Virus record (IMG/VR): IMGVR_UViG_3300025161_000004
Span: 1 to 64,000 of that record
Reading direction: 5' to 3' (one strand)
Length of the DNA stretch: 64,000 nt
Below the pieces are notes generated by a model, which did not search any database, was not told the DNA's origin, and worked only from the letters and a program-made list of their open reading frames with translations. This document shows, one piece after another, positions 1,313 to 38,935 of the stretch. The translations under genes and the position numbers were made by a program. How positions within the stretch are numbered: the stretch's first letter is position 1; each line of letters opens with the position of its first letter.

Positions 1313-1504
1313 AAATTAAAATGGAAAGTTAATCATCACCAAATAAATTAGTCATATGAAAGAAAAACTGAGTTTCATAGAATTGGTAGTGGTTTCTCAT
1401 GACGGATGGTAATGAAGTAATATCTGAAAAGACGTTCTATGTGCTCAGAGGGTAACAAAAAAATGGTACGGAATAACAAAATGTTTAACTTCTAATTAAG
1501 AGAT

Positions 1505-1963
1505 GTGATGAAAAAACTAACTAAAAAACAGGTTATCATTCGGTTACAGAAAACCGTAAAGAAATTGAAGGCTTTGCCTAATTATAAATTTAACTATGGT
1601 AGTTACGTATACAAATCAAAGGAACTTAAGGATGGATCTACTTGTGGTACTGTCTGCTGCACTGCTGGTTGGTATCCTCTTTGGTTTCCTGATGCGGGTT
1701 TGATCTGGAATAATCATAATTTAGAATCCAATACGAAATATGATATCGATAAAACTTTAGCTAGGTATCATGGTATTAATATTAGATTAGTTAATGTACT
1801 TTTCTTGGGTATGGAAGATTTCTTTGATAGTAAGAGGTATAAATTCATAAAATGCTATATTGGTTTCGAGAAAAACGTTTCTAACGTAAAAAGGGATGAA
1901 GTCATCCAACTTTTTGAAATGGTGATTAATCTTATTAAGAAAGATGAAATAGACTATTGTTAA
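1505..1963 (+). CDS. hypothetical phage protein (CGTxxCxAGW motif)
   Basis: 152-aa ORF containing CGTVCCTAGW, a motif typical of small phage proteins. Confidence 0.7.
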   Translation: MMKKLTKKQVIIRLQKTVKKLKALPNYKFNYGSYVYKSKELKDGSTCGTVCCTAGWYPLWFPDAGLIWNNHNLESNTKYDIDKTLARYHGINIRLVNVLFLGMEDFFDSKRYKFIKCYIGFEKNVSNVKRDEVIQLFEMVINLIKKDEIDYC

Positions 1964-2459
1964 AGTGATTATTAAGTATTAACACTAATAATATTAACTA
2001 CGTCAATATATTTACCACCAACAATGTACACATCTGAGACAGATATCAAATTACGATAATCAATAAGGTTGGTAACAAAATCGAAATTATCATAGAATGT
2101 ACGATTTCTGATAATTAATTATCATCCCATACTATGCAAAAGGCTATCTGGGAACGGATAGCCTTTTATTTTCTTATAATGTACATGATTATCTAACGTT
2201 ACATTATACGGGTTCAGATAATGCATTTTTCCCTTAATACATTGACCCATGAATGTACGACTTAAAGCATAATAATTAGCACATCATAGATTGTAAATCT
2301 CTCGTCCCATTTTTATCCTAAATTTGGGACGAATAATTTTAGTTAAGAATTATTTTATAACTATAAATGTAATTTTAGATAATAATAACAGTCACTAATA
2401 ACAACCTTCTATTACATCATGCGATATGAGATTATATTAATCCATAATTTATAATTAAG

Positions 2460-2524
2460 AATGGGTTTCTGATTTGTAAATATCAGAAATTTATAGTTAA
2501 GAATGGGTTTCTGATTTAGAATTG
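2460..2524 (+). repeat. direct repeat copy 1 (about 65 bp; copy 2 at 3069-3133)
   Basis: aatgggtttctgatttgtaaatatcagaaatttatagttaagaatgggtttctgatttagaattg occurs twice. Confidence 0.85.
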
Positions 2525-2895
2525 TTTGTATTCCAAATATTTGTCCTACCATAAAAGCATTTAACTACATTGTACACCTGATAATACCTTCATCTTATAT
2601 GAATGTACGATATTCTACAATGTACGAGTTCTGTATCATTCTGATTGATTTTGAAATCAATGGTTATTGGAATTTCTATTTAGAAATTTCTTTATTACAT
2701 ATTTATTTGGTTATTATATATTTCAAGGATGATTCAGATGGATTAACTATTAATCTTTCTGTGTTTTAAGCATAGGAAACATGTCTGCAATGGCTATTAT
2801 TAATGATTTCTGAGTTTGTGTTCTACTATCATACAGAGTTTCTAAATAAGAAAAAATAAGATGATTTATGGTTCGGTAATCCCTAATTACTCTTA

Positions 2896-2973
2896 TTAAG
2901 ATATGATTTTAAGATAATAATAGAACTTAATCGAGTTAAGATATGATTTTAAGATAATAATAGAACTTAATCG
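2896..2973 (+). repeat. tandem repeat, 40-bp period, 2 copies
   Basis: ttaagatatgattttaagataataatagaacttaatcg at 2896 and 2936. Confidence 0.9.
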
Positions 2974-3230
2974 TGAGAAAACGGATAGCTCCTTATTTTC
3001 TTATGATGTACATGATTATCTAACGTTGTATTATACGGGTTCAGATAAAGTATTTTCTTTCTTAATACAATGGGTTTCTGATTTGTAAATATCAGAAATT
3101 TATAGTTAAGAATGGGTTTCTGATTTAGAATTGCTTACATTCTAATTAGGAAACGTGACAGAATCAGAATTCTTGGTCGGGAAAAAAATTTTAATTAAAA
3201 AAAAATTCTCGTGTGGGCACTCCAAAAAAT

Positions 3231-3359
3231 ATCTAATTCTAACTATATCCGATTTTAATGACAAATCTAATTCTAACTATATCCGATTTTAATGACAAAT
3301 CTAATTCTAACTATATCCGATTTTAATGACAAATCTAATTCTAACTATATATATCCGAT
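3231..3359 (+). repeat. tandem repeat, 34-bp unit, 3 copies plus a partial copy
   Basis: atctaattctaactatatccgattttaatgacaa at 3231, 3265 and 3299, partial at 3333. Confidence 0.92.
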
Positions 3360-3725
3360 ATCTCTTTAAGGCATTTTTTTATGAGAAAAACGAATATTTA
3401 GGCATCCCATTCACAACACACGTCAATTTTCTGGTTTTTTTCATGTAAAAACGCAATTTTTTACTACTCTATAAAACACTAAAGCACACCTCAAAAGTAC
3501 CATTATGGTACATAAAAGTACATATAAAATACCCGATAATTTGATGCCTTAGAACGTGTAAAAACGAATCAACTTCATGTACCTATAATCTCAATTAATT
3601 TCTTTGCATCCCTTTTCATTAAGAATATCTTTCAATCAAAGAAAATGATTGTAATTATTTCTTATATCTTCCAAATTCTATCTTAGAATTATACCCACAA
3701 ATCTTTCAATATCATCAGTAAAGGA

Positions 3726-3935
3726 TTAGTCTCTATAATCACAACCACAGTAATACCCTGTCACCTGATATTCATCACTATTAATTTCTTTCCATCCCTT
3801 TTCATTAAGAATATCTTTCAATTCATTTTTTGTTGATGCAGCAACTGTTTCTTGGTGCATACACATGCAACATTCAAGTTGAATAAAATAGCCTTGATTG
3901 TATTCCTTTTGGCTTATTGATTTTAATCTTTCCAT
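3726..3935 (-). CDS. small Cys-rich hypothetical protein
   Basis: 69 aa with CCMC and CGC motifs. Confidence 0.55.
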   Translation of the reverse strand: MERLKSISQKEYNQGYFIQLECCMCMHQETVAASTKNELKDILNEKGWKEINSDEYQVTGYYCGCDYRD

Positions 3936-3950
3936 AATTATATGTGTTTT

Positions 3951-4047
3951 ATTCTGTATTATTCTATATTATTTTATTCTGTATTATTCTGTGTTATTTT
4001 ATTCTATATTATTCTGTATTATATTATATTATTCTGTATTATTCTAT
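3951..4047. repeat. degenerate 5-nt-unit microsatellite (attct/gtatt/atatt)
   Basis: Directly visible low-complexity array. Confidence 0.8.
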
Positions 4048-4135
4048 TTTCTTTAGATTTATCTTTCTTTATCCTTAGCATAATTAACATAAAAAATCTC
4101 ATATGAACTCAATTCATCTTTGATTTTCGATGCAA

Positions 4136-4372
4136 TCAGGGAAGATAAGATATATCATTATTAGTTGATGATTTTTTCATTATATCGATAACTGCATTAC
4201 CAAACTTTATTAGTTTAGATTCCACTTCCGCCATCGCATGAATCCCTCTTTCCTTCCAGAAATTATATCGTTCAATCCTCCTGTTTTGTATTTCCTGATA
4301 CTTTTCTAATGTTATCCCATTCTCAATCAATTCAGTCGCTGCTTCTAAGGGTGTTTGATTCCAGTGCGTCAT
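4136..4372 (-). CDS. hypothetical protein
   Basis: 78-aa ORF. Confidence 0.6.
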   Translation of the reverse strand: MTHWNQTPLEAATELIENGITLEKYQEIQNRRIERYNFWKERGIHAMAEVESKLIKFGNAVIDIMKKSSTNNDISYLP

Positions 4373-4575
4373 ATTCGAATTTTTATATGTAATTCAATAA
4401 ATTAAACCACCTCAATCCATAATATTCTGATGATTATTTAGATGATACATTATGGTAGTTAAATTTAGCTTTTTATTGGATTAATAATTTTACGACTTAC
4501 ATCTGCATTAGAATAATCGTAAATGAGATTCTTTATAAGAAACCAATGTAAATTTAGGTTTCTATTTTTTTCATT

Positions 4576-13860: not shown

Positions 13861-15939
13861 CTAAAATTCGAATAATGGGATGCCTATAGTATAAGATTTC
13901 ATTTGATATGTGAAATCTTTTAGTATCTCATCAATATATTCACCAATCATCATTTCATCATATACACAAAGAGAATTATCATCTACATCTTTCCATTTAC
14001 CATGTAAAGTATGATCTCTTTCAATTATAGATGCTAATTTTGTTACTGCTTGCTCTCTTACTACAAGCCTGTTCACAAACTTGTGTGCGTGTTCATCTAA
14101 TTTACTCCACTCATATAGGTCGCAATAATACTTAGGTCTTAACTTGATTCTTTCAAGTTCTTCATGTAATAGTTTTTTTGCTATGTCGTTGTACATATTT
14201 ATTATATTTTTTTCTTTATCGTTAAGGTTGTTTAACGTTGCAATATATTTACTGTTAAATAAACTCGCAAATATTTTTTTAGAAAAATTTAATTCGTGTG
14301 CATCATTTTTAAAACCATAAAAAATATTACCTTTGAAGGTAGTCAGTTCAGATATTTTGATTTTATGATGAAATCTATTACTAGTGAAGTTAGTTGTTAG
14401 AACTGAGATGGTACTATTACTTTTTTTTAGAATTTTTTTTGTTATGTTTTTATTACAAAAAAATTCATCAGGAACTACAATATCATCGTACGCCTTAACA
14501 TGTACTTTTATGATATTTGTTAATTCATTAAAAAGTGCAATTATTTCATTCTCTATTGCAGAGGTTAATGACTTAACATCACAATTAACATGTTTCAAAT
14601 ATGCTATTATAATGTTATCTTTATTACTATAATCATATTTTGGTTTCAAAATATAGAAACATTCATATTTATGTTTCAGGTATGTTTGCTTAATTAGTTT
14701 ACTATTAAAGTTCAGTCCAGTACGGAAAATATTTTCTTTTGTTAGAATATCAAAATATGAACCATTAAAAATTGTCGAATTATTACTGAATTTGTTTGGT
14801 TTTATACCATATAATTTATAGCTATAAAATATGAGAACTAATGATTCATTTTTTATTGTTGATTTTATGTTATTATATGGAAATTTAGTTAGTGAAATTT
14901 TATCTTGATTACTGAATATTTTACCAAGAAATATTGAATTTGTTGGGGTAATTTTTAATTCAAATTGTTTTTGTTTGAATTTCAAATAATCAGTAATGGT
15001 TTTAATATCACCACATTGAGCAACATAAAGATCTATTAATTCTTGTCTAACTTCATGTAGTTTATTCTTTAAAAATTCAATTGTTTCATCGGAATATTCG
15101 ACTGCCTCTCTATTCATCGTAACATTGATATCGCCAATATTTGCTTTAATAGCAACAGGAACTTGCCAGTCAGGTGCGTATAAACCTAACGCATTATAAT
15201 CAATTGGATACGCTACGTGACCCAAACAAATGTGAATATTATCGTAAAGATCACTTCCACGGTATAAAAAGGTATTGCCATGATGAATGGTATAATTGTT
15301 GATATTTGGCATGTGATGGTCAAAACCTTCAAAAATAATATTATCAAAATAGTATAGTTGTTTCTTAATTTCACTCAAAAATCTCCCTAAATCGCCAGAA
15401 GCAATGGTAACTTTAACTTCAGTACCATTTCTTTCGGTGGTTTCGGTTTGTTTAATTAATTCGATTTCTGGTGATGTTTCTCCTGCGTAAATGTTGTAAA
15501 AATACTCGATACCATCAACTCTTGTTTTTACAAAAAATGATTGAGTATCGTATGCCAAGGGAGTTTTAGAACCGATACCAAATGCTCCGAATTGTTCATT
15601 GGTTTGTCGTTTAGTCGATTCAAACAGTACTCCATAAACCTCTTCTATTGTTTGAGGAGACATACCAGTACCCTTATCAATAAATGAAATTGTATATCCA
15701 GTAGACTCTTTATTAAGACGTATTATAATTGGATATTTCACTCCTGCAGCCACATGTGAATCATAGCAATTTGAGGTTAATTCTCTAATAATACTACCAA
15801 TGATGTTCGAATATAGGTTTTTTGTGTATGACCTAAAAATCATCATCTGGGCATTATCACTTAATCGAACTTTGATTTTTCTTTGAGTGTTAATAGATTG
15901 AATATCAGCAGTATTAAGTAAATCAGTTTCTAATTTCAT
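13861..15939 (-). CDS. rIIA: rIIA-like protein (N-terminal GHKL/HATPase domain)
   Basis: GHKL motifs LYSN..IRELTSNCYDSH, DKGTGMS, STK and GAFGIGSK, typical of phage rIIA. Confidence 0.78.
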   Translation of the reverse strand: MKLETDLLNTADIQSINTQRKIKVRLSDNAQMMIFRSYTKNLYSNIIGSIIRELTSNCYDSHVAAGVKYPIIIRLNKESTGYTISFIDKGTGMSPQTIEEVYGVLFESTKRQTNEQFGAFGIGSKTPLAYDTQSFFVKTRVDGIEYFYNIYAGETSPEIELIKQTETTERNGTEVKVTIASGDLGRFLSEIKKQLYYFDNIIFEGFDHHMPNINNYTIHHGNTFLYRGSDLYDNIHICLGHVAYPIDYNALGLYAPDWQVPVAIKANIGDINVTMNREAVEYSDETIEFLKNKLHEVRQELIDLYVAQCGDIKTITDYLKFKQKQFELKITPTNSIFLGKIFSNQDKISLTKFPYNNIKSTIKNESLVLIFYSYKLYGIKPNKFSNNSTIFNGSYFDILTKENIFRTGLNFNSKLIKQTYLKHKYECFYILKPKYDYSNKDNIIIAYLKHVNCDVKSLTSAIENEIIALFNELTNIIKVHVKAYDDIVVPDEFFCNKNITKKILKKSNSTISVLTTNFTSNRFHHKIKISELTTFKGNIFYGFKNDAHELNFSKKIFASLFNSKYIATLNNLNDKEKNIINMYNDIAKKLLHEELERIKLRPKYYCDLYEWSKLDEHAHKFVNRLVVREQAVTKLASIIERDHTLHGKWKDVDDNSLCVYDEMMIGEYIDEILKDFTYQMKSYTIGIPLFEF

Positions 15940-16094: not shown

Positions 16095-16832
16095 ATGCCT
16101 AGAAATAAAAAAATTATTCCAGAACCTAATTACAATATTGACCATACATTAAAAGCAAAATCCGAAGATCCATTATATCATTTGCACGAATATGACGTTG
16201 ATTTGAAATCAAATCATATATATTTAATGGGTATTGAAACATACAATCAAGGAAATGGTCTGGAAGGTAGTGAACCTGGGATTGAATATATTATTGCTAA
16301 TAGATTTATACGTAATTTCAATATGCTAATGCGAGTTAATCCAAATGTACCCATAGTAATACATATGAAAACATGTGGTGGTTCTTGGGAAGAAGGGATG
16401 GCTATTTACGATACAATAAAATCATGTCCTTGGTTTGTTACCATTTTAAATTATACTCATGCCAGATCAATGTCATCTATAATATTTCAAGCAGCAAATA
16501 AGCGTGTCATGATGCCTAATAGTTCATTTATGTTTCATGATGGCATTTTCAGCATTCATGGGACTTTAAAACAAGTTAAATCTGCAATTGCTTTCAACAA
16601 ACATGCCGATAAAACCATGCTTGATATATATGCTAATATGATGAATATTACTGGTGAGTTTAAAGGTCAAGGTATTAGTAAAATAAAATCTTGGTTAAGA
16701 AACCAAATGGATAAAAAGGAAGATGTATATTTAACTGCACCAGAAGCAGTTAGACTTGGACTTGCTGATGAAGTGTTTAATTACGACTGGTCAAGTCTTA
16801 CCTCATATAATGAAGAACAAAAGAGTAGGTAG
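16095..16832 (+). CDS. clpP: ClpP-like serine protease
   Basis: TCGGS..EG, ARSMSS (catalytic Ser), FMFHD and EAVRLGLADEV. Confidence 0.85.
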   Translation: MPRNKKIIPEPNYNIDHTLKAKSEDPLYHLHEYDVDLKSNHIYLMGIETYNQGNGLEGSEPGIEYIIANRFIRNFNMLMRVNPNVPIVIHMKTCGGSWEEGMAIYDTIKSCPWFVTILNYTHARSMSSIIFQAANKRVMMPNSSFMFHDGIFSIHGTLKQVKSAIAFNKHADKTMLDIYANMMNITGEFKGQGISKIKSWLRNQMDKKEDVYLTAPEAVRLGLADEVFNYDWSSLTSYNEEQKSR

Positions 16833-16833
16833 C

Positions 16834-17049
16834 TTATTCTGGAAGCTCAATTTCCTTCACAAATTTTGTCAATCTTTCAATCTTAAATTTGGATCTTACA
16901 ATAAGATCATGAGGTATATTTTTTTTCTTTGCGAATCGATAACACATTTCTCTCCATTTCATGGGTAGGTTAGTAAATGCGATAGTTTCGGTTAATTCTT
17001 CTTTCATTGATTTTGATTTCATTTCCTTTTGTGGTTTGAATTTGAGCAA
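16834..17049 (-). CDS. hypothetical protein
   Basis: Short ORF. Confidence 0.45.
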   Translation of the reverse strand: MLKFKPQKEMKSKSMKEELTETIAFTNLPMKWREMCYRFAKKKNIPHDLIVRSKFKIERLTKFVKEIELPE

Positions 17050-17228
17050 CTCTCATCATGTGTCATTGTAAAATACGCACCTCTTTTTGCGATAACATAG
17101 AGATGATTATTCCAAATTTTGGATGTGAAAGTAATTTCGTCTGGAGTATTATTCATTGATGTGAATATTACAATTGATAATATCCCTAATAATAGTAGTG
17201 TTAGTTTGTTTTTAAAGATAGTTTTCAT
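17019..17228 (-). CDS. small secreted or membrane protein
   Basis: MKTIFKNKLTLLLLG signal-like start. The in-frame extension to 17255 lies within the IS left end. Confidence 0.6.
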   Translation of the reverse strand: MKTIFKNKLTLLLLGILSIVIFTSMNNTPDEITFTSKIWNNHLYVIAKRGAYFTMTHDESCSNSNHKRK

Positions 17229-17299
17229 TTTTATATTTTGGAGCGTAAAACCCATCGGTCTTTAGCCGATGGGATATAAGCGACAAATGGAGTGATGAT

Positions 17300-17710
17300 T
17301 TAACCTTGATTTAATATATATTGACGTATGGTTTCTGGTGAAGCCTCACCAATTGAACAGGCAAAATAACCATCAGACCAAAATGTTTTCTCAACCCAAA
17401 ATTGATTTAGCAAGAACTGACGATGCATACGCCAGATGTGAAACGTTGACTCTTGTTTTAACTTACGAACAATGGAACTGATTGACAACCTTGGAATGTA
17501 TTTAATAAGGAAGTGAATATGATTTACATCAGACTCCATTATCTCAATCTCAAAATCTGACCCATCAGATATGTTTTGAAGAAGTTGCTTCATATCATCA
17601 TTTAATTGACCAACCAGAAGTGGTTTGCGATATTTAACAGCAAAGATGATATGTGCTTTTAAATAGTGTTTTGAGCGATTTGTTGATGTGTAATTTGATT
17701 TTTTTGGCAT
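17300..17710 (-). CDS. tnpA: IS200/IS605 Y1 (HUH) transposase
   Basis: HIIFAVKYRK, HUH motif NHIH, FWSDGYF and catalytic Y in IRQYILNQ. Confidence 0.95.
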   Translation of the reverse strand: MPKKSNYTSTNRSKHYLKAHIIFAVKYRKPLLVGQLNDDMKQLLQNISDGSDFEIEIMESDVNHIHFLIKYIPRLSISSIVRKLKQESTFHIWRMHRQFLLNQFWVEKTFWSDGYFACSIGEASPETIRQYILNQG

Positions 17711-17796
17711 AATTAAGATTTTTTGTAAAAGTTTCCACCAAAAACAAACTTTTACAAAAAATTCGACTTGAAATGTGGAAAAATCATTTTTTTTCT

Positions 17797-17807
17797 AAGT
17801 ATTTATA
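17797..17807 (+). promoter_or_regulatory. phage late-type promoter motif AAGTATTTATA inside the IS
   Basis: The same motif precedes many structural and lysis genes in the window. Confidence 0.6.
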
Positions 17808-17838
17808 GATATAACATTTCATCTATAATCGTAAAGGA

Positions 17839-18348
17839 GTGGATTTAAAAAAGTACATAAGAAAAATAATCAGAGAAGAGTTCTTGAAAGAAGATGTTGG
17901 TGGTTTGGTATTATACCATGCCTCAAATGAATTGTTTGATAAATTTGAACTTAAGAAAGGGTATAGAACACATCTTTTTTCGGTTGAATTGACCGATTCT
18001 TATGCAATATTTTTAACTCCAGATGTGGAGGCAGCAAAGCAGTTTGGTGAAAAATATCTATATAAATGTAAAATCCATCCAAAGAGAACATTGGATTGGA
18101 GAGAATATTTAGACGTGAGAAGTTATGAGTGGCTTAAAAAGCAATTTGGGAATATCATCCCTTGGAGTGCAAGTGAATATTGGATGCTCTTGGATGATAA
18201 ACGTGTAATTGATTATTTACATCATAGAGGAATAGATTGTGTTATAATTAGTGAGATAGGTGAACACGACCAATTTGATACATATGCAATGCTTAATCCA
18301 AATGATATTGAAATTATTGAGGTGATTGATTTGAAAAAAAAAATTTGA
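17839..18348 (+). CDS. ADP-ribosyltransferase-like (ART-PolyVal-like) cargo protein with a phage leader sequence
   Basis: LYHAS..FDKF, AIFLTPD..AAKQFG, YLYKC and YAMLNPNDI. N-terminal MDLKKYIRKIIREEFLKE. Confidence 0.6.
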   Translation: MDLKKYIRKIIREEFLKEDVGGLVLYHASNELFDKFELKKGYRTHLFSVELTDSYAIFLTPDVEAAKQFGEKYLYKCKIHPKRTLDWREYLDVRSYEWLKKQFGNIIPWSASEYWMLLDDKRVIDYLHHRGIDCVIISEIGEHDQFDTYAMLNPNDIEIIEVIDLKKKI

Positions 18349-18830
18349 GTGAAAATCAATCTTCATCAAATCAAGAATATATTGCATATCACTCAAGTAA
18401 TTCAAAAATTGATGAGTTTGATTTTGATAAAATTGAATTAAAACCAAATTCTTCTACAAGAATTGATGGAATATTTTTTAGCAACATCCCACAAACATCT
18501 TGGGGTGATTATATCTATAAAGTAAAATTAATTTCGCAAAATCCAGCAATATTTGATTTAAGTAAAAGTAGATTTGATAGTTTAGGTGTTCAAGAAGCAT
18601 TTGATGCATTATTACGTGGCGATACATCATATATTATTGAAGACTTGGTTGAATATGGTGGTATAGAACAGGAAGATGCTGAAAATTTAGCTGAAAAATG
18701 GAGACGTTCTGATTTGATTGTTATTACAAACCAAGTGTATGGAAAACATGATACTGAATATATTGTGCCAGACCCATATTACAATGGAAAGTCTGCTCAA
18801 ATAATTAATTTGGGTTTAATTGAAAAATAA
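18345..18830 (+). CDS. second ART-PolyVal-like cargo domain, possibly fused to the upstream ORF by a -1 frameshift
   Basis: AYHSS..IDEFDF, GIFFS, WGDYIYKVKL...NP and EYIV. TTG start immediately after an A10 tract. Confidence 0.6.
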   Translation: MSENQSSSNQEYIAYHSSNSKIDEFDFDKIELKPNSSTRIDGIFFSNIPQTSWGDYIYKVKLISQNPAIFDLSKSRFDSLGVQEAFDALLRGDTSYIIEDLVEYGGIEQEDAENLAEKWRRSDLIVITNQVYGKHDTEYIVPDPYYNGKSAQIINLGLIEK

Positions 18831-19979
18831 ATGTTAAAGGCATATAAATATCGCATATTTCCAACAGAAGAGCAACAAGGTCTTCTTGCCAACATATTTG
18901 GTCAAACCAGATTTGTTTACAATCTTGGGCTGGAAACCAAAATATCTGCTTATGCTGGAAACAAAACAAACATTGATTGCTTTGACCTAATTAAACAGGT
19001 GAAGGAGCTGAAAGATACCGAATGTCCTTGGCTCAAGGAAGCACCATCACAGGCTTTACAAATGGCACTCAGAAACCTTGATAATGCATACACCAACTTC
19101 TTTAAGGGAAAAGGATTTCCAAAGTTTAAGAACAAACATGGAAAACAATCATTTCAGTTGCCACAAGGTGTGTTCTTATCAGAAGATAACAAACAAATAT
19201 TCATTCCAAAGCTTAAATTCGTTGGAATTGATTTGCATAGAGAATTTAAAGGCGATATTAAAACAGTTACTGTAAGCAGAACAGTAACAAACAAATATTT
19301 CGTGTCAATTTTGGTTGACAACAAACAGGAATTACCAAAGAAGAAACCAATAACAGAACAATCTGCTGTTGGGATTGACCTTGGGATAAAAGATTTTGCA
19401 ATAACATCAGATGGAAAGAAATTCGAGAACAAAGATTTCTTTAAATCTACAATGCAAAAATTAAGAGTAGCACAACGCTCTCTCGCAAGAAAGCAAAAGG
19501 GAAGCAATTATTATAAACAACAAAAACTCGTTGTTGCCTTGCTTCATGAAAAGGTGAAGAATCAAAGACAAGATTATCTTCACAAGATAAGTAAATACCT
19601 TGTTGATAATTATGATACTATTTGTCTTGAGGACTTATCTGTGAAGAACATGGTTAAAAACCACTGCCTTGCAAGAGCAATAAGTGATATGGGTTGGAGA
19701 GAATTCAGAACAATGTTGGAATATAAAGCTGAGTGGCAAGGAAAAAATCTATCAGTAATTGGTAGATTCGAGCCATCAAGCAAGACTTGCAATTGTTGTG
19801 GATATATCAACAAAGAATTGACTCTTAATGATAGGGAGTGGACATGCAAAGGTTGTAATACCAAACATGACCGTGATGTTAATGCATCAATAAATATTAA
19901 AAATTTCGGGCTTAGGAACAAGTCCAGCGTTGCTCAAAGTGATGGGATACCATGTGCTTGCAACGTAGAAGCCCATTAG
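18831..19979 (+). CDS. tnpB: RNA-guided endonuclease TnpB
   Basis: KAYKYRIFPT HTH, RuvC-I GIDLG, RuvC-II CLEDL, Zn finger CNCCG..CKGC and RuvC-III DRDVNA, all intact. Confidence 0.97.
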   Translation: MLKAYKYRIFPTEEQQGLLANIFGQTRFVYNLGLETKISAYAGNKTNIDCFDLIKQVKELKDTECPWLKEAPSQALQMALRNLDNAYTNFFKGKGFPKFKNKHGKQSFQLPQGVFLSEDNKQIFIPKLKFVGIDLHREFKGDIKTVTVSRTVTNKYFVSILVDNKQELPKKKPITEQSAVGIDLGIKDFAITSDGKKFENKDFFKSTMQKLRVAQRSLARKQKGSNYYKQQKLVVALLHEKVKNQRQDYLHKISKYLVDNYDTICLEDLSVKNMVKNHCLARAISDMGWREFRTMLEYKAEWQGKNLSVIGRFEPSSKTCNCCGYINKELTLNDREWTCKGCNTKHDRDVNASINIKNFGLRNKSSVAQSDGIPCACNVEAH

Positions 19980-20020
19980 TCTTTAGCTAATGGGTAGTTC
20001 ACTGAGTTCATATTATGGTT
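19890..20020 (+). ncRNA. TnpB omega/reRNA scaffold plus guide (guide from the right flank, 20003 onward)
   Basis: Stems gggctt/aagtcc, cgttgc/gcaacg and the right-end hairpin ending TCAC. The 5' boundary is approximate. Confidence 0.6.
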
Positions 20021-20227
20021 TTAAGACAACATTAGATACTATCTTATTCGCTAGTTTTATCTTTTTTTTGTTTAAATTTTCTACTTTCTAGTTTGTTTTT
20101 TTGTTTCTTTTTATCAAGAACAATCATTGGTTTAACTTTATGGGTAGTTTCTCTCATGACCTTTCTCATCATCTTGAGTCTATCCATATTAGTTATTTTA
20201 TTTTTCTTTGATTTTGTCATACAGTAG

Positions 20228-20256
20228 ATTATACGAATTACTAATGTATTTGGTTA
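20228..20256 (-). promoter_or_regulatory. putative phage ECF-sigma promoter TAAC-N17-CGTATAAT
   Basis: Exact motif with 17-nt spacer. Confidence 0.6.
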
Positions 20257-20477
20257 GATCTTATGTATTTTTCTCTCAGATTATATATTTCAATAGTTAA
20301 TTTTCTAATTTCTTCATAAAGGTGCTCTAATCCAGAATCGTTATTTTTAATTAATATTGGCACTCTACGCTGAAGCGTCACTTTTAATTCCTCCTTTTCT
20401 TTTATTTGGTTTAATAGTGTGGTTATTTCTTTTTCACTCCTTTTCATCATTAACAAATTTAGTTTTTTTATTGACAT
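20241..20477 (-). CDS. hypothetical protein
   Basis: Short ORF in an operon-like run. Confidence 0.5.
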   Translation of the reverse strand: MSIKKLNLLMMKRSEKEITTLLNQIKEKEELKVTLQRRVPILIKNNDSGLEHLYEEIRKLTIEIYNLREKYIRSNQIH

Positions 20478-35513: not shown

Positions 35514-38500
35514 TTATTTTATTTTCTTGTTTTGAATATATTTTCTTGGGTCATATTTAATCAAATGCATCATTTTATCCATATTTTGTAACTTAGTTTC
35601 ATCATTTCTAACACTTTCGCTAATTACCTGAGTATTTTTAACTCTATAAAATTTACCATTTTTATGATATAAATTATAAGCACTTATAAAGTCTTTATAT
35701 GAGTGGTTTTCTTCAACCATAGAAGTATAACTATTACCCATACCATCTGTTAAAACTTTTTGGTATGATGAATCGATTTTATCTAGTTCAATACATTCAT
35801 TTAGCTTTATATCAACAAATTTATACTTCCCTAATTCATCGATATATTTACCAGATATAATCGATTCATTATTATACCCTTTCTTATATTTATTATTATC
35901 AAGTTTTTCTTTCCCTATTGAAGCAGGTTGTACATCTTTATTGTACATTGGTGCTTTAGATTTATACTCCATCTTTTTTTGACGCAATTCATAAATCGCA
36001 TCACCTAAATCCGCTTTCATTCTTTTTTCGAATTTTTCTGATGGTTTATTATCATAGACAATATCTTGCATACCATCACCTCTATTCATTGCTAATTCAA
36101 GCATTTCTTCTTTAGATAAATTCCTTTTAGGAATTTCATCACCTCCTTCATTGGCTGAATTACCAACATTCTTAAATGCTTCTCCCTTGGTTTTCTTTAG
36201 GGTCTCTTTTTCAATATCCTGTGCTAACTTATAAGGATTGTCTCCAACTTCTTGAGTTAACTCACTTGACTTTGGATATGATTCCAAATCAATTACATCA
36301 TTAAAGCTTGAATTTTTAATATCTGATTTAAAATTCTTTTCGTTTGCATCCTTTAATCTATCAAGATTAACTAATGCAGAGTGTCTTCTTTCTTCGTTAA
36401 CCATTTGATTTAATTTATTTAAGTGTTTTTTGTAAAATTCTAACTCTTTATTTATACTTTCTTCTAATGATTCACCAAAAGATGAAAATTGAGATGTTGA
36501 TGTTTGCTTAACCATTGAAGTATTATTACCACTAACCATAGATGGGTTTTGTGGTTCAATTATAGATTCTTTAACTGATTGTTTCCATTGTTTAGTATTA
36601 TCACCAGTCTTAACAGGTTTCGATTCTACTTTACCTTTTACTGGTTTATTAAAACCTGTCGATTCACCAACATACTTCTTTTTGTAATCTACTTTAGGAT
36701 TATATTCAATATTGTCAATTACTTTAACCATAGATATCGCATCACCATCACTTATTTCTCCATTAATCCATCTCCAATAAACATCCTCATTATTAAATGA
36801 TAGAAAATATTCCAAATTAGTTCTATCATATTTTTCTGATTCATTAACTTTTTCGGGTAAACCTTTATGTTCAGTCGATGCAAAATCCTCTACATCTGAA
36901 GGTTTCATAGATGCTGCAGCTTTAGCTACAGCAGGACTTGGATTTTTTAACAGACCTTTTTGGGCTGCTCTAACCATGCCCATAAATCTTTGTTGTTTTC
37001 GTGATACTGCTCTCTCATTTATATTTGACTTATCTACTATATCTTTCCATGACGTATCATCAGTCAAATAATGTATAATTTTATTTAGTAGCGAAATGTT
37101 TTCACGTGCTTCTGAATTAGAAGATGCCATCGCATGATTGTTCGCTCTAATCAGTTTCACAGTATCCAATAAATCTTCTTCGGATATATTATTTAATACA
37201 GTAAATTGATGGATAGCATCTTTAATTTCATGATAATTTTTAGCATGTTTCAGTTTATCACCTAAATTATATAATTGACTCAACTTAAGACCTTTAAATG
37301 ATTCATCGATATGTTTTGATTCAGAAATTCCCATTTCTGATTCGGCTGAATTATATAATGCATCAATTTCCGTATCTGTCATCGCTTCAAGATCTTTCTC
37401 AACTGTTGGAGATACATTATCTTGAAATACTTTGTCTTTATTTTGAAGTATAAATGCTATCTTATCTTCTTTAGTGTGTGCGTGATGTTCATTCATTGAC
37501 TTTAAAAATTGTGGATCTACTAAAGCACCCAATGTTTTCATTTGCTTAGTAATTCTTGGATCAACAATACTTCTATCCACAAGTAAAGAATATTGTGCTA
37601 ACAATGATACTAAATATTCAGCATTACCCTCTAAATCAGATAATATAGATTTTAATGGCACTCTACTGGAATTATCGATAAATTGAGTTATGAGACTTTC
37701 ATCATCCATGCTGCTGTGGAATTCTTTTTGTTTTCTAAATAGAGATTTTTTCGCATCTAAAATTTTAGATGTTTTATTTTTTAAATTTACTATACTATTT
37801 TTTGTTTGAAATAAATCATCAATCCAAGTTTCATGAATAATTTCTTCCTTAGTGGATTTACCGTTATCATCATTATGAGATGTCATACCTTCTGGTACAC
37901 AATTAGGAACTTTTTTACCATCTTTCTCCTTAAAACCAATCATTTCATACCCATCCCAACAAGGATCAGCATCCTCATTTAATGTATTTATGTATTCTTT
38001 AAATACACTAGAGTCAGTTAAATATGAACCGTCCTTTAAAGCATTTTCTAAAACTATACCACCCATCCACGCAGGTTTATTATTTGCTGGTTTACCATTT
38101 TTAGACCATACTACTGGCGTACTATATTGACCAGATGATGCAGATGTTGTCGTTTCATCTATTTTTTTATGTAATGATGGTGTATACGAACCTGCACTAG
38201 CAGAACCAGTAGTTTCTTCAACTTTATTCACATTATTTTGATTTTCTTCTTTATTTTCCTTTTCTATTGGTAGTTTTTTATTTTTTTTTATTTTTTCTTT
38301 TAATTGATTAATACCACTTTGATCCCTTCTTTTCTTTTTGACTGGTACTGTCATTTTATATTTTTGAAGATATTTCGGACTATTCAATACATAATCATTG
38401 AATATGATATTCATTAAGGTTTCGTTCCAGTGATACCCATATCTATCTTTACCTTCAATGGCTAATTTTTCATATACTGCGGAAAGTTTAGGGTCGCCAT

Positions 38501-38729
38501 GAACAAGAGCCTCCATTTTTGGAAGTTTAAATATTTTCCTTTTTAAACCTAACTCATTTTCATTTAAGGATAGATCAATTTCCTTTAAGACATCTGGGTT
38601 AACACCTCTACTATTAATCTGCTGTTTAAAATCAGTATCGATTTTTTTACCGATTTCGGTAGGCTTTTTAAGTGTATTTTTTAGTTTTAAATCCTCAAGT
38701 CCCATTTTTTTTATATTTCTTTTTTCCAA
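35514..38729 (-). CDS. large head-associated modular (poly)protein
   Basis: 1071 aa. Modules ETTGSASAG, PCWDGYEM..KVPNCVP and AVSRKQQRFMG..DFAST.HKGLP (DUF3008-like) are separated by [ILV]xE sites. Confidence 0.65.
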   Translation of the reverse strand: MEKRNIKKMGLEDLKLKNTLKKPTEIGKKIDTDFKQQINSRGVNPDVLKEIDLSLNENELGLKRKIFKLPKMEALVHGDPKLSAVYEKLAIEGKDRYGYHWNETLMNIIFNDYVLNSPKYLQKYKMTVPVKKKRRDQSGINQLKEKIKKNKKLPIEKENKEENQNNVNKVEETTGSASAGSYTPSLHKKIDETTTSASSGQYSTPVVWSKNGKPANNKPAWMGGIVLENALKDGSYLTDSSVFKEYINTLNEDADPCWDGYEMIGFKEKDGKKVPNCVPEGMTSHNDDNGKSTKEEIIHETWIDDLFQTKNSIVNLKNKTSKILDAKKSLFRKQKEFHSSMDDESLITQFIDNSSRVPLKSILSDLEGNAEYLVSLLAQYSLLVDRSIVDPRITKQMKTLGALVDPQFLKSMNEHHAHTKEDKIAFILQNKDKVFQDNVSPTVEKDLEAMTDTEIDALYNSAESEMGISESKHIDESFKGLKLSQLYNLGDKLKHAKNYHEIKDAIHQFTVLNNISEEDLLDTVKLIRANNHAMASSNSEARENISLLNKIIHYLTDDTSWKDIVDKSNINERAVSRKQQRFMGMVRAAQKGLLKNPSPAVAKAAASMKPSDVEDFASTEHKGLPEKVNESEKYDRTNLEYFLSFNNEDVYWRWINGEISDGDAISMVKVIDNIEYNPKVDYKKKYVGESTGFNKPVKGKVESKPVKTGDNTKQWKQSVKESIIEPQNPSMVSGNNTSMVKQTSTSQFSSFGESLEESINKELEFYKKHLNKLNQMVNEERRHSALVNLDRLKDANEKNFKSDIKNSSFNDVIDLESYPKSSELTQEVGDNPYKLAQDIEKETLKKTKGEAFKNVGNSANEGGDEIPKRNLSKEEMLELAMNRGDGMQDIVYDNKPSEKFEKRMKADLGDAIYELRQKKMEYKSKAPMYNKDVQPASIGKEKLDNNKYKKGYNNESIISGKYIDELGKYKFVDIKLNECIELDKIDSSYQKVLTDGMGNSYTSMVEENHSYKDFISAYNLYHKNGKFYRVKNTQVISESVRNDETKLQNMDKMMHLIKYDPRKYIQNKKIK

Positions 38730-38935
38730 ATCATTCTTTTTAGATATAATGTTTTAAATAAGGCTTCTAACGCATCCTTAGCTATATTCAAAGTTTCTTT
38801 ATTTGAACTCGAACTGTCTTTTTTTAAAAGACTACCTATTCTTTTATCGAGTTCAGAATCTAGAACTTCGTCAATTTGATCTCTAATTAGAGATTTTAGT
38901 TCAGTTTTAGTTAGATCCATAGAAACACTTATCAT
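38711..38935 (-). CDS. small late protein
   Basis: MDLTKTELKSLIRDQI leader, late-type motif upstream. Confidence 0.6.
   Translation of the reverse strand: MISVSMDLTKTELKSLIRDQIDEVLDSELDKRIGSLLKKDSSSSNKETLNIAKDALEALFKTLYLKRMIWKKEI

Follow-up and report, generated by a model that had tools for sequence, protein, structure and literature searches.

The window analysed here (64,000 nucleotides, positions 1 to 64,000 of IMG/VR record IMGVR_UViG_3300025161_000004) belongs to a 247-kb record with 28.6% GC, from sediment and wastewater samples, and represents an uncultured T4-superfamily jumbo phage whose T4-type head genes encode a scaffold, a gp23-like capsid protein, and an S77 prohead protease (164316-165023 of the genome). 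Within the window lies an IS605-family element with the following features:

17229..20002, + strand: whole IS605-family element, ~2.77 kb, in the order left end, tnpA, passenger gene, tnpB, right end
17248..17273, + strand: left-end subterminal palindrome AAACCCATCGGTCTTTAGCCGATGGG, self-complementary, 81% identity to the right-end copy
17300..17710, - strand: tnpA, Y1 (HUH) transposase, 136 aa (Pfam Y1_Tnp PF01797, E 2.3e-32; phrog_2577)
17718..17762, no strand assigned: perfect 17-nt inverted repeat, 100% complementary arms, 11-nt loop, flanked by the tnpA start and the promoter motif of the passenger
17796..17812, + strand: late-promoter-like motif TAAGTATTTATAGATAT, 40 nt upstream of ORF1
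17839..18348, + strand: ORF1, 169 aa, predicted first ART-fold domain (ART-PolyVal-like), corresponding to the N-terminal half of a 330-aa protein in relatives
17839..17892, + strand: leader, ORF1 residues 1-18, MDLKKYIRKIIREEFLKE, putative capsid-targeting propeptide with an LKE motif
18334..18343, + strand: A10 run, domain linker and site of the frame break, 11 nt in in-frame relatives
18345..18830, + strand: ORF2, 161 aa, predicted second ART-fold domain, without the leader present on stand-alone homologs
18831..19979, + strand: tnpB, 382 aa (Pfam matches; phrog_506, E 5.9e-132)
19969..19994, + strand: right-end subterminal palindrome AAGCCCATTAGTCTTTAGCTAATGGG, self-complementary, with the element end 8 nt further on

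The tnpB product matched three Pfam domains, all above cut-off (HTH_OrfB_IS605, PF12323; OrfB_IS605, PF01385; and Cas12f1-like_TNB, PF07282), and its start codon abuts the ORF2 stop (TAA ATG). The right terminus of the element is ...TAGTTCAC at 20002. Copies of the element were recovered at 98.7-98.9% (L074-L078) and at 85-89% identity (L033, L067, and L070) to the window element, and the alignments of all of these are bounded exactly by 17228-17230 and 20002, with differing flanks beyond, i.e., the same element with identical ends occurs in at least five different flank contexts. The unaligned ends of Logan contigs likewise begin at 20002/20003, and copies L033 and L074-L078 carry tnpA, the fused passenger gene, and tnpB together in the same element. 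TTTAT stands immediately 5' of the element, before ATTTTGGAGCG, in all copies and may represent the target site; because no empty insertion site was found, the target sequence and the element end are not separable. An Rfam scan of 17000-20300 returned chance-level matches only and no annotated omega-RNA family. The preliminary description had placed the cargo inside a transposon, and this placement is correct: with its tnpA, tnpB, palindromes, and shared precise ends, the window element is, by all sequence indications, an active, mobile IS605-family insertion sequence.

Expression of both the passenger gene and tnpB seems to depend on a late-type phage promoter motif carried within the element. 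The motif GTATTTATA occurs 51 times in the genome and, when only positions 8-70 nt upstream of ORFs of at least 100 aa are counted, 32 copies are in sense vs. 8 in antisense orientation. It precedes the genes for the terminase large subunit, portal, tail sheath, S77 protease, and scaffold as well as ORF1, and the core of the late-type motif is retained in element copy L033.

ORF1 starts with GTG at 17839, its N-terminal leader is followed by DVGG, and its 3' end reads GAT TTG AAA AAA AAA ATT TGA, with the stop at 18346-18348. ORF2 starts with TTG at 18345, in the -1 (+2) frame relative to ORF1, and retains the leader tail LSE at its very start (18345-18353); its frame stays open for only five codons further upstream (TGA at 18327-18329) and is undecayed in the window copy. 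The preliminary description had noted that ORF1 ends in the A10 run and that a -1 shift there would join the two ORFs, and both readings are confirmed from the sequence, the shifted product being ...DLKKKNLSENQ..., in frame with ORF2. A genome scan found five A/T runs of at least 10 nt in the 246,768 bp, and A10 is the sole such run between two same-strand ORFs with homologs.

In close relatives of the same IS605-family element, the passenger is a single, plain in-frame gene encoding 330 aa. The linkers of these relatives read DLKKENLSE, DLKKQKLSE, or DLKREKLSE and are encoded by 11 non-homopolymeric nucleotides (AAAAAAGAAAA, AAAAAACAAAA, and AAGAGAGAAAA), in which the run is interrupted by G or C. 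That is, the window linker is one base shorter than that of every relative examined (A10 vs. 11 interrupted bases). The fused homologs that the preliminary description suggested looking for were thus found as in-frame proteins (P0112, P0113, P0128-P0130, P0132, P0134, P0136, and P0137), with P0112, P0129, P0130, P0132, and others being 330 aa and P0113 327 aa in length, and fused in-frame forms were also present in Logan contigs from independent wastewater, hot-spring, and metatranscriptome runs. P0130 equals window ORF1 plus ORF2 at the N-terminus, linker flanks, and C-terminus compared, and differs at the linker alone, and the split two-frame layout was seen only in assemblies of the window lineage. 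On the strength of these fused homologs, ORF1 and ORF2 are two halves of one gene. The earlier claim that a -1 slip joins the two ORFs therefore stands as far as the single gene is concerned; the slip itself does not look programmed, the layout being unconserved.

Both halves, in turn, are best traced by homology to stand-alone phage proteins of ~170 aa, each with a ~20-aa leader ending in (F/Y)(L/I)NE, and the fused linker retains the tail of the second domain's leader (the LSE/LNE site). Element copies with a single cargo domain also exist (L067-L071), in which the ORF2 module (about 18344-18822) is missing. P0126 (168 aa) and P0135 (171 aa) were considered as further frameshift alleles and rejected, being single-cargo copies with tnpB directly after ORF1. 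Searches for relatives of the ORF1 family in IMG/VR found none, and a scan of JGI metagenomes for this family returned the window's own contig plus five stand-alone relatives at 73-75% identity and nothing else; likewise, the fused protein had no homolog among 50,697 deposited phage genomes or in any cultured phage.

Both domains are predicted, from structural models, to adopt the ART fold, which bears out the two ART domains of the preliminary description. AF2 models of ORF1 and ORF2 (pLDDT 82 and 89, respectively) matched exclusively ARTs with Foldseek and VIA-align, the VIA-align Z scores being middling for both domains (6-9). The top Foldseek match of both was 6kyf (AcrIF11; E 2e-4 and 4e-4), at 14-17% identity and TM-scores of about 0.4. 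With VIA-align, ORF1 matched (Z 8.7-7.7) a domain of a cyanophage A4 pre-ejectosome protein, followed by DT, ParT, and PARP, and ORF2 matched ARTs at Z 6.8-6.0. At the sequence level, the Pfam model ART-PolyVal (PF18760; gathering cut-off 31.2 bits) matched ORF1 weakly (E 0.11, 13.7 bits) and the fused P0112 at 18.6 bits, both under the cut-off, and matched 17 of the 20 ORF1-family members at E < 0.1 (best 8.8e-7). ORF2 had no sequence-level match in Pfam and the ORF1 profile found nothing meaningful among PDB sequences; the two families aligned to each other with hhalign at E 3.8e-5. An invariant YH(A/S)(S/T) motif places the strand-1 His at H27 of ORF1 (strand 24-29) and H16 of ORF2 (strand 10-18). 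Candidate Tyr and acidic residues, chosen by conservation only, are the invariant Y73/Y75 and nearly invariant E139/D144 in ORF1, and Y58 and E138 (in 'TEYIVP') in ORF2. The two domains may possess ADP-ribosyltransferase activity.

The ORF1 leader is one of a family of N-terminal modules whose ends read (F/Y)(L/I)-x-E; their length is typically ~18-22 aa, and 10 aa in some relatives. Scored against a profile of 92 true leaders, the ORF1 leader reached E 0.035 among 3,172 candidate N-termini. Hydrophobic-x-E occurs in each of the 92 leaders examined, and [LI]xE was present in 92% of them vs. 39% in shuffled controls. Stand-alone ORF1-type and ORF2-type proteins all bear the leader, and leaderless members of the ORF2 family are only those fused behind a leader-bearing domain. 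Numerous small, unrelated proteins in related jumbo phages also carry the leader, including those of neighbouring genes, with four leader-family genes in this genome (ORF1 and three others) and seven to eight in a complete 288-kb relative. In the AF2 model, the ORF1 leader is a low-confidence helix (pLDDT 52-56) that is unpacked against the domain. The leader proposed in the preliminary description is thus real, i.e., a shared module ending in L/I-x-E whose LSE/LNE tail persists in the linker. The similar leader reported at 38920 (MDLTKTELKSLIRDQI) fared differently: the sequence is present, as part of a 74-aa minus-strand ORF, but did not match the 92-leader profile and falls outside the family; this ORF had no match in three related records, and its resemblance looks like chance.

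T4 internal proteins carry a capsid-targeting sequence (CTS), are cleaved at L/I-x-E, and the ADP-ribosyltransferase Alt is packaged in the T4 head (PMC3012670, PMC9026906). The T4-type prohead protease invoked previously does have its counterpart here in the S77 protease, which is also encoded in three of five related records, and the last L/I-x-E before the conserved core of the capsid protein is YMINE followed by S, a predicted maturation site. By analogy, capsid targeting and cleavage of the leader are plausible.

We therefore favor, as a somewhat probable explanation, that the IS605 passenger is a double-ART gene of which the window holds a recent frameshift allele, with a capsid-targeting leader cut by the S77 protease and ARTs that are ejected. 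The normal 330-aa passenger would consist of the 18-aa leader, ART domain 1, an A-rich linker (DLKK-x-x-LSE-NQ), and ART domain 2, and the loss of one linker base would have split the gene into ORF1 and a leaderless ORF2; we consider this event recent because the window run is one base shorter than that of the in-frame relatives. ORF1 alone would still be made and should function, because natural single-cargo copies carry just this domain. Some full-length protein is probably also produced incidentally, when RNA polymerase slips on A10 or the ribosome makes a -1 slip there, given the known behaviour of A runs of 9 or more (slippage is documented on A runs of at least 9, PMC1088944, and on AAA-AAA, PMC1851650). 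The leader would act like the CTS of T4 internal proteins and direct the protein into the scaffolding core. It would be cut off after LKE by the S77 prohead protease, which may also cut the linker after LSE, and the ART domain(s) would then leave the capsid together with the DNA and modify proteins of the host. The data themselves show the gene structure, the fused relatives, the mobility of the element, the ART folds, the leader family, and the link between the late-type motif and structural genes; we infer that the protein is packaged, cleaved, and ejected, that it is enzymatically active, and that slippage rescues the split gene.

Alternatively, A10 might be an evolved site for programmed -1 ribosomal frameshifting or transcriptional slippage that fixes the ratio of ORF1 to the fusion. 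The run does hold the slippery heptamer A_AAA_AAA in the ORF1 frame, the shifted frame enters an undecayed ORF2 through the LSE site, and A-run slippage is known mainly from IS elements (PMC1088944). However, every diverged relative is in frame and has G or C interrupting the run, the two-frame layout was seen only in assemblies of the window lineage, and the hairpin downstream begins directly after A10, without a spacer, and is not significant (-12.8 kcal/mol, z -1.54; 15 of 200 shuffles fold as well). Conservation is thus lacking for both the slippery run and the two-frame layout; programmed slippage is unsupported and we regard it as very improbable. It is also conceivable, but in our view quite unlikely, that A10 is a homopolymer sequencing or assembly error, the true phage having 11 bases at the run and an unbroken 330-aa gene. 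Errors are common in homopolymers, P0130 and the split allele disagree at the linker only, the A10-bearing assemblies (246,768 bp, 247,825 bp, and run X1, which may be the source sample) may share one sample, and contigs cannot reveal A10/A11 heterogeneity. Against such an error, a separate Logan assembly of X1 gives A10 at a word depth of about 40 with no variant reported, the JGI, ENA, and Logan pipelines agree on A10, and an all-A 11-base run was found in no sample.

A different question is whether the leader targets the capsid at all. It could be a generic helix or expression module at the N-terminus, spread by recombination along with the promoter cassette, with a role in translation initiation, oligomerisation, or another localisation, and with ARTs that act in the producing cell, as T4 ModA and ModB or AcrIF11 do. 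The leader is always accompanied by a conserved promoter cassette, the two being conserved together across different genes, and because it travels with this cassette, its conservation could in part stem from a role as a recombination or expression module instead of from targeting. Further, AcrIF11, the top fold match, is an expressed enzyme that is not packaged, two huge records with short, MKYLKLFENF-type leaders had no S77 (PF03420) match, and modelling the S77 protease in complex with residues 1-45 of ORF1 gave a score of 0.00, which is uninformative either way. On the other hand, the leaders diverge strongly yet all keep hydrophobic-x-E, which argues for selection on the peptide itself, the leader motif matches the predicted maturation site of the capsid protein, ORF2-family members lack a leader only when fused behind a leader-bearing domain, and the upstream motif is common to structural genes. 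Hence, we consider a generic leader somewhat doubtful. A bolder extension of capsid targeting, which we find unlikely and offer as speculation, is that the element is a mobile 'injected-effector cassette' whose A-rich linker is a hypermutable or slippery switch between one- and two-domain output. With its own late-type promoter and a leader-tagged double ART that the head machinery loads, cuts at LKE/LSE, and ejects, such an element would disseminate among jumbo phages a weapon for host takeover or against defences, and would thereby pay for its own spread, the A-rich linker also being the junction at which the second domain is gained or lost.

Under the favored reading of an injected, leader-tagged double ART, the closest known systems are the T4 IPI, IPII, and IPIII internal proteins, which likewise share a short N-terminal propeptide on otherwise unrelated small proteins, ending in L/I-x-E and cut by the T4-type prohead protease, and T4 Alt, a packaged and injected ADP-ribosyltransferase (PMC3012670, PMC9026906), to which the ART-like window passenger would correspond. 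The T4 CTS is, however, a 10-mer with no sequence homology shown to the longer leader found here, Alt belongs to the R-S-E clade (PMC5512222) as opposed to the H-Y-E/D side, to which the window ARTs probably belong, and, unlike the T4 genes, the window gene lies inside an insertion sequence. For the ART-PolyVal (Tox-ART-HYD2) domains found in phage polyvalent proteins, packaging and co-delivery with the DNA have been predicted (PMC5512222; Iyer et al. 2017); they are likewise phage-borne, in one or several copies per protein (PMC5512222), and ORF1-family members match their model, with the window protein scoring below the Pfam cut-off. Unlike polyvalent proteins, the passenger has no MuF, portal, or MPTase peptidase, comprises two domains in only 330 aa, and would be processed by the prohead protease rather than by an in-built peptidase. 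AcrIF11, an anti-CRISPR ART of phages and plasmids, is likewise a small, single-domain protein of similar size, but is without a leader, and for the window ARTs there is no evidence of a CRISPR target.

The element itself resembles IS605/IS608 in its divergent Y1 tnpA and tnpB, subterminal palindromes, lack of terminal inverted repeats, and precise ends, and differs from them in the 1-kb passenger with a phage-type promoter motif between tnpA and tnpB, in the translational abutment of this passenger to tnpB, and in the existence of variants with one or two passenger domains. Similarly, in slippage-rescued frameshift alleles (bacterial 9A/9T, PMC1088944; pDEST17 AAA-AAA, PMC1851650), a one-base change of a run also splits an ORF; here, the run itself is unconserved.

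If the leader is a capsid-targeting signal, it would represent a recognisable tag for the injected proteins of uncultured T4-superfamily jumbo phages, and many small 'hypothetical' genes would become testable candidates for host-takeover or anti-defence effectors, several of them ART-like. Such an effector would here be carried by an insertion sequence under a phage late-type promoter, with near-identical copies at several genomic sites, i.e., an unusual TnpA/TnpB element whose passenger could benefit its phage host. For annotation, the locus offers a clean example of a two-ORF call that corresponds to one gene split at a homopolymer.

The passenger reading frames ORF1 and ORF2 lie between tnpA and tnpB of an IS605-family element, in a viral record of 246,768 bp (28.6% GC; CheckV completeness 79%) whose first 64 kb make up the window, and are arranged as follows.

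17300-17710, minus strand: tnpA, Y1 transposase, 136 aa (PF01797, E 2.3e-32)
GTG 17839 to 18348, plus strand: ORF1, 169 aa (ORF call)
TTG 18345 to 18830, plus strand: ORF2, 161 aa (ORF call)
18831-19979, plus strand: TnpB, 382 aa (HTH_OrfB_IS605, OrfB_IS605, Cas12f1-like TNB)

The preliminary description proposed that the two frames encode an ADP-ribosyltransferase (ART) polyprotein that is joined by a -1 slip on a run of ten A, targeted to the capsid and processed by a protease. Its account of the sequence is accurate: ORF1 ends in GAT TTG AAA AAA AAA ATT TGA, with the A10 run at 18334-18343, ORF2 is in the -1 frame relative to ORF1, and a -1 shift gives DLKKKNLSENQ. Only five A or T runs of ten or more occur genome-wide (247 kb), this being the sole one between same-strand ORFs with homologs. 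Our first two word searches, with ORF1 and ORF2 as queries, reached proteins up to about 290 aa only and returned just stand-alone proteins: those related to ORF1 have 160-177 aa, and most of those related to ORF2 have 178 aa; a third, with a longer ORF2 relative as the query, recovered the fused homologs that the preliminary description had proposed looking for. These in-frame proteins include P0112 (330 aa; 24 members in its 90% cluster), P0113 (327 aa) and P0130, which equals the window's ORF1 plus ORF2 except for the linker (identity shown over the N-terminus, linker flanks and C-terminus) and is found within the same element in at least three genomic contexts. Eight distinct 330-aa forms appear in the cluster listing, with linkers KKQKLSE, KKEKLSE, KKENLSE and KRGKLSE.

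Contigs of four public sequencing runs were placed on 17250-20050. Runs X4 (wastewater) and X19 (a metatranscriptome) have one A more behind 18333 plus A>G at 18339, so that their linker, GAT TTG AAA AAA GAA AAT TTG AGT GAA, reads DLKKENLSE in frame, and hot-spring run X13 has GAC TTG AAG AGA GAA AAA TTA AGT GAA, DLKREKLSE, also in frame. Because the linker has 11 bases in every relative versus 10 in the window, and none carries the uninterrupted run, we interpret the window copy as a frameshift allele of a gene that is normally one continuous frame. Apart from run X1, where Logan's own assembly has A10 at a word depth of about 40, the split form was seen only in two contigs, of 246,768 and 247,825 bp; all contigs with this allele may come from one sample. 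The same comparison argues against a programmed slip site, since no relative has the run or the two-frame layout, and a hairpin immediately 3' of A10 was not significant. It is established that A runs of nine or more lead to heterogeneous transcripts (PMC1088944) and that AAA-AAA supports -1 ribosomal shifts rescuing single-base deletions (PMC1851650). ORF2 has neither a leader, the short N-terminal module with an L/I-x-E motif that ORF1 carries, nor a recognisable ribosome-binding site 5' of its TTG, and its product would be made only via reinitiation or slippage on A10.

The element, about 2.77 kb long, is an active IS605-family element with ORF1 and ORF2 as its passenger. The alignment of all its copies starts at 17228-17230 and stops exactly at 20002 (...GGGTAGTTCAC), with unrelated flanks beyond (at least five left and at least six right contexts), and Logan contigs mapped on the stretch likewise end at 20002/20003. 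Contigs L074-L078 carry copies 98.7-98.9% identical to the window's, L033 one at 88.9%, and L067 and L070 copies at 83-87%; the element is single-copy in the source genome. A 26-nt palindromic sequence at 17248-17273 is repeated at 19969-19994 with 81% identity. L074 and L076 have the left flank in common and different right flanks, which suggests a rearrangement beside the element or a chimeric assembly across it. Between the start codon of tnpA and the passenger promoter motif lies a perfect inverted repeat of 17 nt (17718-17762; loop of 11 nt), which could be an operator, terminator or insulator. In run X4, summed contig depth is ~1,970 over the element's right tip and flank (19976-20050) and ~5-56 elsewhere; that is, a short sequence at 19976-20050 is highly repeated in that sample.

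One-domain versions of the element bear on how the two halves came together. In L067-L069, ORF1 ends in ...DLKKK*, and in L070-L071 in ...DLKREKKD*, with tnpB directly next in both cases. Since the homology of these copies to the window covers 17230-18343 and resumes from 18815/18823, the second ART domain (18344-18822) is an indel, with A-rich TTGAAAAA-like microhomology on both sides and the A-run exactly at the junction. Stand-alone ORF2-type proteins have ~20 additional N-terminal residues (e.g., MNKDMKLRKFIATTIREFLNEQ), and stand-alone ORF1-type proteins start very similarly (e.g., MKDLRKFIKTTIREYLNEN). The ORF2-family profile alignment begins at 18333, four codons 5' of the TTG, and the ORF2 frame extended through the run reads ...NLSENQ, which aligns with the leader tail (Y/F)LNEQ; we conclude that the fused gene originated when a domain carrying the leader was linked to a second one, of whose own leader just the final residues survive. 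P0113 is a more diverged fusion (linker ELKKLNESE) with no transposase genes adjoining on its contig, and therefore the ART fusion is not confined to the element. On one metagenome contig (L011:481-4537), three leader-bearing genes (118, 136 and 178 aa) form a unit that is present twice in tandem, either by gene amplification or as an assembly effect.

We accept both ORFs as having the ART fold, with putative catalysis. ORF1 alone matched ART-PolyVal in Pfam weakly (E 0.11), and 17 of 20 members of its family did so at E < 0.1 (best 8.8e-7); ORF2 had no sequence-level match, and profile-profile comparison connected the ORF1 and ORF2 families across their initial 72 columns (E 3.8e-5, probability 71%). 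Both AF2 models are of good confidence (pLDDT 82 for ORF1, 89 for ORF2), and each has as its top Foldseek hit 6kyf, the structure of AcrIF11, an anti-CRISPR ADP-ribosyltransferase, followed by ParT, tankyrase/PARP, MbcT and diphtheria toxin. VIA-align gave Z 8.7-7.7 for ORF1, with a domain of a cyanophage A4 pre-ejectosome protein at rank 1, and Z 6.8-6.0 for ORF2, the entries listed for both being ARTs only. The strand-1 histidine is invariant (H27 in ORF1, H16 in ORF2), and candidate Tyr and acidic residues, chosen from the alignments, are conserved in both families, including ORF2 E138 in TEYIVP, which resembles the PARP catalytic motif. In phage polyvalent proteins, ART domains are enzymes of the H-Y-D type that frequently occur in several copies per protein, and their packaging has been predicted (PMC5512222).

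The leader gives the strongest comparative result. On related jumbo-phage contigs, neighbours dissimilar to the ART families start with the same kinds of leader (MSEDIRKMIDKVKTFKQFLNEQ..., MRKQIDKIKNWKQFLNEG..., MELRKFIATTIREYLNE(N/Q/E)...), and a short kind, MKYLKLFENF..., is found in tandem arrays. A profile from 92 distinct leaders matches ORF1 and three more genes of the source genome (200286, 200606, 204662), as well as seven or eight genes (133-255 aa) of a complete 288-kb relative; the 'similar leader' proposed earlier at 38920 did not match it, and we regard that resemblance as chance. Hydrophobic-x-E is present in 92/92 leaders (35 once near-duplicates are removed), and [LI]xE in 92% versus 39% of composition-matched shuffles. 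The ORF1 model shows the leader as a helix of low confidence, not packed against the domain, and the leaderless ORF2 model is a high-confidence fold. Small-gene tandem arrays with MKYLKLFENF-like starts throughout occur in L020 (676-kb record, 1463-4452) and L024 (422-kb record, 1317-2640), several of their genes having YHGT/YHST ART-type motifs.

The source genome encodes T4 head machinery:

161121-162776: gp23-like capsid protein
164316-165023: S77 (T4-type) prohead protease (PF03420, E 1e-22)
adjoining the S77 protease gene: scaffold-like protein, 471 aa, containing FLKE and TINE

Aligned to mature T4 gp23*, the capsid protein would have its mature N-terminus slightly upstream of Q69. YMINE60|S, the final L/I-x-E ahead of the conserved core, is the predicted maturation site, akin to the leader ends (F/Y)(L/I)NE, a choice partly guided by the T4 gp23 propeptide. 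The capsid proteins most similar to it belong to an uncultured phage of 595 kb (31% identity), Rhodothermus phage RM378 and Flavobacterium phages; the prohead protease is present in three of five related records, and a PF03420 search of L020 and L024 gave no match. No homolog of the fused protein was found in cultured phages (50,697 deposited phage genomes).

The nonamer GTATTTATA, one copy of which lies upstream of ORF1, is an orientation-specific motif with 51 genome copies, 32 in sense 8-70 nt 5' of ORFs of at least 100 aa and 8 antisense. The genes behind it include those for the terminase large subunit, portal, tail sheath, prohead protease and scaffold, from which we infer a late promoter. 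Its sequence is that of the T4 late promoter TATAAATAC in reverse complement, but the two are used in opposite orientations. The element's copy (TAAGTATTTATAGATAT, 17796-17812) is 40 nt 5' of ORF1, with its core retained in the 89%-identical L033 copy, and relatives' leader genes have a longer common cassette, ...aattttaaat.tGAATATTTATATATAAA...ATG. Because tnpB starts directly 3' of the ORF2 stop (of the ORF1 stop in single-cargo copies), passenger and tnpB are probably co-transcribed. Metatranscriptome contigs span 17794-19156 and not most of tnpA, although contigs are no proof of transcription and carry little weight. Window positions of the nonamer include 16068, 17799, 35434, 38989 and 55639. 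A ClpP-family protease gene (16095-16832), which has the late-type motif, adjoins rIIA (13861-15939) and is distinct from the S77 protease at 164 kb.

T4 gp21 cleaves after L/I-x-E, the 10-residue capsid-targeting sequence of T4 internal proteins suffices to package foreign proteins, and the ART Alt is injected after being packaged and trimmed at both its ends (PMC9026906, PMC3012670). For T-even phages the concept is established: injected proteins of diverse kinds, an ART among them, share a conserved targeting propeptide. What is new is a distinct and far larger family of leaders in uncultured jumbo phages of the T4 superfamily, the attachment of such leaders, unlike in Alt, to H-Y-E/D-type ART domains (whose packaging is putative), and an active IS605-family element that has captured, as its passenger, a leader-ART gene together with a phage-type promoter motif and that exists with one domain or with two. 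On sequence grounds, we consider the capsid-targeting reading of the leader plausible, with the balance about even. Under this model, the normal passenger would be a 330-aa protein made late in infection and carried by its leader into the assembling core, where the prohead protease would cut off the leader after LKE and may also part both domains at the linker's conserved LSE/LNE; the ART domains would then leave the capsid with the DNA by ejection. In the window phage, leader-bearing ORF1 should act like the natural single-cargo version.

Finally, at 35514-38935 (minus strand) a 74-aa ORF (38711-38935), with a GTATTTAT motif 10 nt 5' of it, overlaps a 1071-aa ORF (TTG 38729) in the -1 frame at TGGAAAAAAGAAATATAAAAAAAATGG; these could be two independent genes or the halves of another split gene. 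The 1071-aa protein's repeats TTGSASAGSYTP / TTTSASSGQYSTP resemble STDSASSGQFETV of the capsid protein.
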